This document shows, one piece after another, positions 43,484-44,860 of a stretch of 64,000 nt of DNA; position 1 is the stretch's first letter, and each line of letters starts with the position of its first letter. A program made the translations under genes and the position numbers. The DNA lies in assembly GCF_964204645.1 (NCBI RefSeq), contig NC_134030.1, positions 20,296,210 to 20,360,209 on the forward strand. The letters are read 5' to 3'. This DNA comes from Tubulanus polymorphus. Lineage: Eukaryota > Animalia > Nemertea. The notes below the pieces were generated by a model. It was not told the origin of the DNA. It did no database searches and was given only the letters and a program-made list of their open reading frames with translations.

Positions 43484-44860
43484 ATGCGTTCTTTAGTTTT
43501 ATTGTCTCTGATGGTTTGTTTGATGGTGGCTTTCTACTCCGTTCAGGAGGGAGAAGCACACACGGTCTACAGATGTCGTCGTTATTGCATAGTTCGCTGC
43601 ATCTACGACAAGGAAACTGAAAAATGGAGATGTTATATCATCTGCTGGTATGTGTGCACCCGCGTTCCCCACCTCCACCGCGATGCACGAGACGTTTCTG
43701 CAGTAAGCGCTGTGAGTTTTATTCTTATTCTATGATTACCATCAACTTTAACGTAATCACTTTTAAATTCAAAACGAAAGTGATGACACTGACTGTATTT
43801 GACATCGGTATAATTGACGTTTTACAGGCAGACAATTCAACACAAAAAGAACACGAAGTATCGATTCCGAACAATTTCGATTTCTTCGATATAGACGAAG
43901 ATGAAAAGATTTCAGTGGAAGAATTTTCCGCTGGAATGAATTTGGATGACGATGATGCCAAATTCCTCATACACCAGGCCGACAATAATGGTAAGTTGTG
44001 AGAATGTTGGATAATGTACTCTTGTGAAGTGTGTGATAATGCTATTTAAGTTAAACTAGATACAGGTTAGATATACTGTACATCTCCTACATTGCAGAGG
44101 ACTCATTTGTCGACAGGGAAGAATTCAAAAACGCTCCGTGGCCATTCCAGGAAAAGAATGATGGTAAGTGAAAACTACCGCGAATCGTCGATTATCTTCC
44201 AACTTGCATCAGATCTTTATCCTCGTAACGAGAGAATCCCACAATAAACTCAGCCAAAACGAGAAACTTTAATTAGAGTATATATATCTATGTATAGAGT
44301 ATATATATATATATATATATATATATATATATATATATATATATATATATATATATATATATATATATATATATATATATATATATATATATATATATAT
44401 ATATATATATATATATATATATATATATATATATATATATATATATATATATATATATATATATATATATATATATATATATATATATATATATATATAT
44501 ATATATATATATATATATATATTTGCGCAACGTTTCGGTTAAAGACTATTACAGCCATCATCAGGCGTACTGAGAACAGGAGAATATTACAAGATATTTG
44601 TACAAGACCAAAACAATAGAAACAGAGTTAGTGATTAAAATTTTGAAAGGGGAATAGATTAAAGTAATGACATAAAAGCTGGAAAACAGTAGTAAAGTAA
44701 GCTCGCAATTTTCTCGTTCTGGCTGAATTTATTGTCGGATTTCTCTCGTTGTCATCTTACGCGGATATTGTGTATCTTCTCGTCTCTATCCTCGTAATTT
44801 CATGTAAAATCTCGTATCTTCGTATTTTCAGTTGAATCGTGTGACTGCAAGAAACCATAA
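43484..44860 (+). CDS. Secreted precursor of 158 aa: signal peptide + cationic 6-Cys peptide + acidic two-EF-hand domain
   Basis: Exons 43484-43702, 43828-43990, 44098-44163 and 44832-44860 (GT-AG, phases 0,1,1). EF loops [12 protein letters not shown] and [12 protein letters not shown]; C-terminus ...[22 protein letters not shown]. Confidence 0.85.
44226..44752. mobile_element. Penelope-like inverted-repeat remnant in intron 3, with about 220 bp of (TA)n and a hammerhead core (44526-44567, minus strand)
   Basis: aacgagagaatcccacaataaactcagccaaaacgagaaa and the inverted arm tttctcgttctggctgaatttattgtcggatttctctcgtt; the minus strand reads CGC-CUGAUGA...GAAAC-GUU-GCG. Confidence 0.65.

Follow-up and report, generated by a model that had tools for sequence, protein, structure and literature searches.

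In this study, we analyzed a gene on the plus strand of a 64,000-nucleotide stretch (the window) of the genome of Tubulanus polymorphus, a palaeonemertean ribbon worm. It extends from the start codon at window position 43484 to the end of the stop codon at 44860 and, with a probability of roughly 0.6 by our estimate, encodes a secretory prepropeptide which corresponds in nemerteans to the equinin B precursor of sea anemones and releases a cationic hairpin peptide for defence. An original prediction, made from the DNA letters, had proposed at this place a new kind of defence-peptide precursor, in which a beta-hairpin peptide with three disulfides is followed by a C-terminal acidic EF-hand pro-domain.

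The locus is a real, expressed gene. It consists of four coding exons with GT-AG at every border and intron phases 0/1/1 (Table 1), and start and stop codon are exactly those originally predicted. RefSeq carries here a 161-amino-acid (aa) uncharacterised protein (P0001, LOC141907135), which is identical to the model spliced with the donor at 43711 and was found, alongside two paralogues, by a word-index protein search using the exon-2 reading frame. Coding exon 1 has two in-frame donors, and the choice between them sets the product size (43711, 161 aa; 43702, 158 aa). Two public sequencing runs were mapped over positions 43250–44255 (1006 letters), whereby a (TA)n repeat was avoided. Run X1 covers exons and introns evenly and is DNA-like. 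Run X2 covers exons only, with very high word depth and an intron depth of zero; it was judged RNA-like from this coverage pattern, and its contig depth cannot be read as an expression level. X2 contains both joint 43711>43828 and joint 43990>44098, each with GT..AG, and donor 43702 was rejected because it is absent from the RNA-like contigs, which use 43711 only, as does RefSeq. A loose end after 44163 continues into the letters of exon 4; as the (TA)n repeat was avoided in the mapping, the exon 3–4 junction rests on this read-on and not on a spanning joint. Together, the two joints and the read-on confirm all three coding introns. One non-canonical X2 joint (43648>43849, TA..AA) and mixed joints at the 5′ end resemble chimeras formed between paralogues in the contig graph. 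A chance open reading frame (ORF) can be dismissed because of the RefSeq model, the X2 joints and the close paralogues with the same exon plan.

The signal peptide is followed by a 44-aa peptide (P0001:26–69), whose features were found as claimed in the original prediction: six cysteines in the pattern C-x3-C-x3-C-x10-C-x3-C-x3-C, a net charge of +6 and an R-D-A-R end. The peptide is rich in arginine and aromatic residues, with the boxes CRRYC and CWYVC, and contains three histidines. AlphaFold2, run with a cross-phylum alignment of 30 sequences, predicted a beta-hairpin with strands 29–42 and 47–60 at a predicted local distance difference test score (pLDDT) of 90–97; an earlier run with a shallow alignment of 15 rows had given the same topology at moderate confidence. 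The strand register (i+j=89) places C31/C58, C35/C54 and C39/C50 opposite one another, and read from this register the cysteines are predicted to pair as a three-rung ladder (C1–C6, C2–C5, C3–C4), in agreement with the expected connectivity. Independent support for a ladder hairpin comes from relatives in which cysteines are lost or gained as symmetric pairs: paralogues C and D have both lost C1 and C6, protein P0110 is without the inner pair, and P0011 of Actinia tenebrosa has a symmetric fourth rung. Most relatives retain the spacing 3-3-n-3-3, with n down to 2, and a loop of two residues between the arms fits a beta-turn and does not fit a helical hairpin. A cystine-stabilised alpha/alpha fold, which would also be compatible with C-x3-C, was rejected in view of the short loops and the strands predicted at pLDDT 90–97.

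The defence reading draws real support from sequence homology to the precursor family of a purified peptide. Equinin B was obtained from an acid extract of tentacles of the sea anemone Actinia equina and purified by its antibacterial activity (PMC11051070; La Corte et al. 2024). It comprises 34 aa, among them eight cysteines in the spacing 3-3-3-5-3-3-3, and its net charge is about +11; its precursor was described as signal peptide, antimicrobial peptide (AMP) and prodomain, and the closest protein was named as XP_031572955 of A. tenebrosa, which is annotated with EF-hand sites (PMC11051070). XP_031572955 is P0011, which was recovered by our profile search with an E-value of 3.3e-16 over profile positions 3–143. 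In BLASTP, P0001 and P0011 align collinearly across both peptide and EF-hand pair (32% identity, 125 aa, E 1e-14), and paralogue F matches P0011 with E 4e-19, the identities being 32–33% across both comparisons. Since P0011 is the protein named nearest to equinin B and the match is collinear, the window gene belongs, as a nemertean homologue, to the precursor family of equinin B. Both have a signal peptide, an Arg/Lys-rich peptide with symmetric C-x3-C arms, a basic site and an acidic EF-hand pair in the same order, and the gene structure is shared as well. They differ in the cysteine spacing (3-3-10-3-3 in Tubulanus, 3-3-3-8-3-3-3 in P0011), with three rungs and a 10-residue turn in Tubulanus compared to four rungs in the equinin type; furthermore, the Tubulanus peptide is rich in Tyr, Trp and Ile, unlike equinin B, and its precursor has, in comparison to the Actinia protein, an APWPF motif, an extra exon and a C-D-C tail. 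In the equinin paper, a helix was modelled on aurelin, and the ladder hairpin and the wide distribution of the family were not recognised (PMC11051070). A full-length match to an already characterised family had been named beforehand as an outcome speaking against the original prediction. The homology found here lowers the novelty of the gene. It also strengthens the defence reading, because a relative was recovered as a free peptide with measured, although weak, antibacterial activity.

Because the claim of novelty had rested on the absence of relatives, an exhaustive profile search (A1) was run with an alignment of three database proteins and exon segments from four paralogues. Many of the matches were ordinary proteins with multiple EF-hands, but about 25 proteins of 125–210 aa matched over their whole length, with signal peptide, cationic Cys peptide (mostly 3-3-n-3-3), K-R and EF-hand pair in this order, and with the EF-hand consensus P..F..YD.N.DG.I...EF ... 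AD.NGD.....EF..AP[WFY].F. Relatives were found in cnidarians (A. tenebrosa, Paramuricea clavata), molluscs (Liolophura sinensis with several paralogues, Lottia gigantea, Gigantopelta aegis, Sinanodonta woodiana) and an annelid (Owenia fusiformis). Relatives from amphioxus and frog (P0136, P0066, P0045) are secreted EF-hand pairs with APWxF and no cationic Cys peptide. A second word-index protein search with the family alignment added just other Tubulanus paralogues and one mussel protein. The 'new' architecture was therefore overstated, as the plan of C-x3-C ladder and EF-hand pair spans Cnidaria to Spiralia and has one published member. No paper on the family came up in literature searches for the Lottia accession and for CRRYC, APWPF and EEFKNAPW as motifs, and it is not mentioned in the nemertean toxin and neuropeptide papers that were searched.

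The gene structures support common descent of these precursors. In Tubulanus, Owenia, Liolophura and Actinia, exon 1 contains leader, peptide and cut site and ends in phase 0, and the EF-hand 2 loop is interrupted in its codon 4 by a phase-1 intron in Tubulanus, Owenia, Branchiostoma and Actinia alike; the octocoral copy and some further copies of the family are intronless. It had also been suggested that the peptide could be a swappable cargo on a conserved EF-hand carrier. This holds in so far as the N-terminal cargo varies across the wider family, from ladders of two, three and four rungs to a linear basic peptide and none in chordates; against swapping, ladder and carrier were inherited together, with conserved introns.

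The remainder of the protein (about 90 residues) has a net charge of −18 and carries two helix-loop-helix units of the EF-hand type (PF00036/PF13499), whose 12-residue loops have all liganding positions (D1, D/N3, D5, E12). The Pfam EF-hand_1 score of 24.6 bits is just below the cut-off of 25.4 bits. In the Protein Data Bank (PDB), the family profile matched calmodulin lobes with an E-value of 1e-20, and Foldseek superimposed the C-terminal domain, predicted by AlphaFold2 with pLDDT 94–97, onto the C-lobe of Ca2+-calmodulin with a root-mean-square deviation of about 1 Å over 54 residues. The calmodulin matches identify a generic, canonical EF-hand pair, and with its C-D-C-K-K-P tail the domain corresponds to the acidic pro-domain of the original prediction. 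A relation to the MCFD2-like cargo receptor of the endoplasmic reticulum (ER) was rejected, since the PDB profile search yielded generic calmodulin and centrin lobes only. The Pfam matches to Myticin-prepro, DUF7651, T4_y05I_N and SPARC_Ca_bdg were likewise set aside, all being under their cut-offs; for Myticin pre-proprotein (PF10690, cut-off 28.5 bits), P0003 reached 21.1 and P0002 16.3 bits, and P0001 gave no match. The two cysteines of the C-D-C tail (P0001:154–156) have no obvious partner in the Tubulanus proteins. Relatives from cnidarians, some from molluscs and some others instead carry a Cys at loop position 10 of EF-hand 2 and another at the C-terminus, a placement suggestive of a disulfide clamp on the EF-hand pair of such proteins.

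Between peptide and pro-domain, the seven intact close copies of the Tubulanus genome have a basic site at one column (K-R or R-K-R, and R-D-A-R in the window copy) followed by D-V-S/T, and relatives in other phyla have KR or RR at the corresponding position. This conservation argues for the convertase-like processing site that had been proposed from R-D-A-R. A predicted complex of the peptide (residues 26–69), the pro-domain (70–161) and two Ca2+ scored 0.02, which is no evidence for or against their interaction.

Exon-wise searches of the worm's own assembly revealed eight further close loci, six of them in tandem on contig C5 (~22.31–22.33 Mb), one on contig C11 and one on C5 at 0.63 Mb. 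With two more distant members (P0015 and P0031, C5:5.07 Mb) and the window gene, the genome contains at least 11 related loci. Gene models were built for all close loci. Seven close copies, including the window copy, are intact and have a common exon plan, and models F and G are identical to the RefSeq proteins P0156 and P0157. All seven have kept the leader, the basic site, an N-x-T sequon, both EF-hand loops, APWPF and C-D-C. The tandem cluster contains two pseudogenes, copies B and E (L019:5255–7182 and L022:4208–5925). In copy B, the frame stops at codon 4 and shifts at the cleavage site, and an insertion of 1.2 kb lies in intron 2; copy E is interrupted by a stop within the leader and by a ~950-bp insertion in exon 1 that splits the peptide-coding part. 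In RefSeq, the pseudogene with the stop at codon 4 is modelled as a leaderless 115-aa protein (P0158). The distant pair P0015 and P0031 (C5:5073344–5075900, L034 and L036) is oppositely oriented, and both retain the EF-hand pair and APW.F; P0031 has five cysteines after a His/Pro-rich extension and an R-Q-K-R site.

Whether the paralogues carry hypervariable peptides on a conserved carrier had been posed as a check, and this is the observed pattern. Mean identity among the intact copies is 47% in the peptide part (between leader and basic site) and 69% in the pro-domain. In the pairwise comparisons, W is the window copy and A, C, D, F and G are paralogues. Between W and its closest paralogues, the nonsynonymous distance (dN) of the peptide is about 0.5, compared to 0.06–0.08 in the pro-domain, where the synonymous distance (dS) is 0.16–0.23. 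Intron and upstream distances are 0.13–0.28, so that the peptide diverges at about twice the intron rate. The ratio dN/dS (omega) of the peptide is ~1.5 for W–C and W–D and ~0.95 for C–D and F–G, and 0.17–0.34 for the pro-domain. Heterogeneity of nonsynonymous and synonymous changes between the two parts is marginal (p = 0.03–0.05) in W–C, W–D and F–G and not significant in the other pairs. As the peptide dN exceeds the intron distances and the cysteines are kept, replacement in the peptide is faster than the local neutral yardstick, a pattern which fits diversifying selection with marginal statistical support. Synonymous change is elevated in the peptide segment as well for some pairs (W–A, dS 1.0, vs 0.16–0.26 in the flanking leader and pro-domain), and either gene conversion of the flanking parts or a swap of the peptide segment could account for it.

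Two known groups of antimicrobial peptides resemble the Tubulanus precursor in part. Mytimycin of mussels (Mytilida) likewise consists of a signal peptide, a cationic Cys-rich peptide, a polybasic site and an anionic extension with an EF-hand pair, and also the residues after the cut are similar (RR|DVSF in mytimycin, where the site is followed by D/S-V-S-F, and KR|DVSA in Tubulanus). This shared architecture does not prove common descent. The mature mytimycin peptide has 10–12 cysteines on an unrelated scaffold, starts with A-C-C and has the core CN-I-F-C/G-C-x-C and no 3-3-n-3-3 ladder, and its EF-hand extension ends in EEFDKEK without APWxF. A comparison by eye with 40 precursors (PMC8004829, supplement 6) did not find the mytimycin Cys array in the Tubulanus peptide, in accordance with the different Cys scaffold noted in the original prediction, and no mytimycin was recognised among the best 150 profile matches. 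Tachyplesin, gomesin and arenicin-3 are, like the Tubulanus peptide, cationic, aromatic-rich, two-stranded hairpins with parallel disulfides four residues apart. Arenicin-3 indeed contains CWYVC, as had been noted, opposite CYRRC, whereas in Tubulanus CWYVC stands opposite CRRYC. These peptides have 17–21 residues and two disulfides, compared to about 32 structured residues and three predicted disulfides in Tubulanus. Arenicins lie at the C-terminus of a BRICHOS precursor, whereas the Tubulanus peptide is N-terminal and its protein gave no Pfam match to BRICHOS, which sets it apart from the BRICHOS-linked AMPs (arenicin, capitellacin, nicomicin). The likeness to arenicin-3 is regarded as convergent, because there is no sequence homology and arenicins come from BRICHOS precursors.

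For the equinin-B-type precursor of Tubulanus, we propose the following course. The 25-aa signal peptide would be removed in the ER, the six cysteines would oxidise to the ladder C31–C58, C35–C54 and C39–C50 and lock a two-stranded beta-hairpin of ~32 residues, and the N-x-T site just past the junction would be glycosylated. A cut of furin or prohormone-convertase type after R-D-A-R (K-R in the paralogues) would then free a hairpin of ~40–44 aa, which would act in the secretions of the worm as a membrane-active host-defence peptide, antimicrobial and/or directed against predators. The EF-hand pair would bind Ca2+ and would most likely be an intramolecular partner that offsets the charge of the peptide and helps it to fold or to be sorted or packaged within the Ca2+-rich secretory pathway.

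Several points weigh against this proposal. In the window copy, both EF loops have a residue other than Gly at position 6, and cleavage at R-D-A-R, a less favourable site than the paralogues' K-R, is assumed. The distant paralogue P0015 keeps the Cys spacing (3-3-8-3-3), but its peptide is nearly neutral and therefore a poor fit to a purely membrane-lytic role for every family member. Synthetic equinin B is weakly active, with a minimal inhibitory concentration of 0.25 mg/mL, and its disulfides and precursor are not rigorously established (PMC11051070). Finally, the constraint on the EF-hand part exceeds what a mere charge-masking pro-piece would need, and the chordate relatives carry the EF-hand domain without the cationic peptide, so that the domain may serve a function of its own, which could even be its primary one.

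Taken further, this could mean that the functional product is a secreted EF-hand protein, e.g. a Ca2+-binding part of mucus, extracellular matrix or secretory granules, with the hairpin either staying attached as a basic anchoring or binding domain or being a dispensable by-product. It is the EF-hand part that is conserved (omega 0.17–0.34), its motif P..F..YD.N.DG.I...EF...APWxF is common to cnidarians through chordates, the amphioxus and frog proteins do without the peptide, and the cleavage site of the window copy is degenerate. Nevertheless, the basic processing site is kept at one column across phyla, equinin B was obtained as a free 34-aa peptide, and the fast divergence of the peptide (omega at least about 1) with strictly kept paired cysteines indicates that the peptide is itself under selection. 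We consider this explanation unlikely.

A peptide serving mainly as a toxin against animals, as an ion-channel ligand or cytolysin in proboscis or skin mucus, and not as an antimicrobial, also has little probability. Peptide toxins are known from nemertean mucus and proboscis secretions (reviews PMC6410017, PMC9415933), equinin B came from tentacles, a venom-rich tissue, and gene duplication with accelerated evolution of the mature peptide is typical of toxins. However, no similarity to known nemertean toxin families was found, with the Pfam and PDB searches giving EF-hand matches only, antibacterial activity is the sole experimental datum for the family, and members also occur in non-venomous filter feeders and grazers (freshwater mussel, chiton, limpet).

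A signalling role as precursor of a neuropeptide or hormone would have its model in HCS2/pleurin of molluscs, reported in nemerteans too, a hybrid secretory precursor which, as far as described in the passage of PMC8398477 citing Bogdanov 1998, has small peptides beside a region with an EF-hand motif. Although the basic cleavage site and the position of the gene between two intronless ORFs for rhodopsin-type G-protein-coupled receptors would agree with such a role, we regard it as very improbable, because pleurin peptides are short, Cys-free, amidated PRX peptides and P0001:26–69 has neither a G-K/R amidation signal nor a PRX motif, a tandem cluster with pseudogenes and very fast peptide divergence is atypical of ligand–receptor systems, composition and ladder are those of membrane-active hairpins, with CWYVC and CRRYC boxes mirroring arenicin-3, and the relative equinin B was isolated through its antibacterial activity.

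The features of the gene are listed in Table 1. The putative 5′-untranslated region (UTR) exon has weak depth in X2 (4–7), and the mixed joints at this end probably derive from paralogues. Intron 3 holds a perfect (TA)n microsatellite of ~230 bp (44292–44523), and its counterparts in the paralogues are ~100 bp long and without the repeat. The flanking intronless ORFs (34838–35785 on the plus strand and 46434–47384 on the minus strand; 315–316 aa) encode rhodopsin-family seven-transmembrane proteins and match Pfam 7tm_1 with E-values of 3e-14 and 4e-15. At 14480–15390 of the window, a minisatellite with ~22 tandem copies of a 41-bp unit was found; its translation gave spurious Cys-rich tblastn matches at 14.5–15.3 kb, which were therefore rejected as paralogues.

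Table 1. Features of the Tubulanus polymorphus precursor gene in window coordinates, with the evidence for each.
Feature	Coordinates	Strand	Evidence and remarks
TATA-like box (tataaaag), putative	43286..43293	+	Sequence; ~30 bp ahead of first RNA-like coverage (low-depth bin 43318–43351)
Probable 5′UTR exon	43320..43394	+	Splice motifs; ends aat|gtaagt, acceptor ttctag|ctgaag at 43478
Signal peptide, 25 aa, ends G-E-A	43484..43558	+	Hydrophobic leader; AlphaFold2 helix 3–18; kept in all paralogues
Cationic 6-Cys peptide, P0001:26–69, ends R-D-A-R	43559..43690	+	Cys 3-3-10-3-3; predicted strands 29–42 and 47–60
Start of pro-region, D-V-S-A-V-S-A, end of coding exon 1 (43484..43711)	43691..43711	+	Donor 43711|gtgagt, X2 and RefSeq
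Intron 1, phase 0	43712..43827	+	X2 GT..AG joint; position and phase shared with Owenia, Liolophura and Actinia relatives
Coding exon 2	43828..43990	+	N-S-T sequon; EF-hand 1 loop 43888–43923; first three codons of EF-hand 2 loop from 43981
Intron 2, phase 1, in codon 4 of EF-hand 2 loop	43991..44097	+	X2 joint; shared with Owenia, Branchiostoma and Actinia
Coding exon 3	44098..44163	+	Rest of EF-hand 2 loop to 44123; A-P-W-P-F 44133–44147 (family consensus APWxF)
Intron 3, phase 1	44164..44831	+	Contains (TA)n microsatellite
Coding exon 4	44832..44860	+	Tail V-E-S-C-D-C-K-K-P and stop codon

By its sequence, the window gene adds a nemertean to the equinin-B-type precursors that carry an EF-hand pro-domain, an architecture which as such was already known. 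It connects a purified sea-anemone peptide with unannotated genes of nemerteans, molluscs and an annelid. AMP families are usually limited to one phylum, whereas here one precursor plan with shared introns crosses phyla. Tentatively, and with considerable doubt, one might go further and regard the ladder-hairpin/EF-hand precursor as one family of host-defence genes, older than the divergence of cnidarians and bilaterians, with the EF-hand pair as a general Ca2+-dependent carrier of secreted bioactive peptides (for folding, neutralisation and granule sorting) that is homologous to the extensions of mytimycin and pleurin/HCS2 and that chordates have kept without its cargo. Such a family may have been overlooked since automatic annotation labels its members as 'EF-hand domain-containing'. 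For nemerteans, our literature searches turned up no gene-encoded AMP, and within the literature searched the window peptide would be the first candidate. The family also provides a natural set of disulfide-ladder hairpins with two, three and four rungs, which in their design are longer relatives of the drug leads tachyplesin and arenicin-3, and it raises the question why an EF-hand pair, and not a simple acidic spacer, has persisted next to these peptides for over half a billion years.

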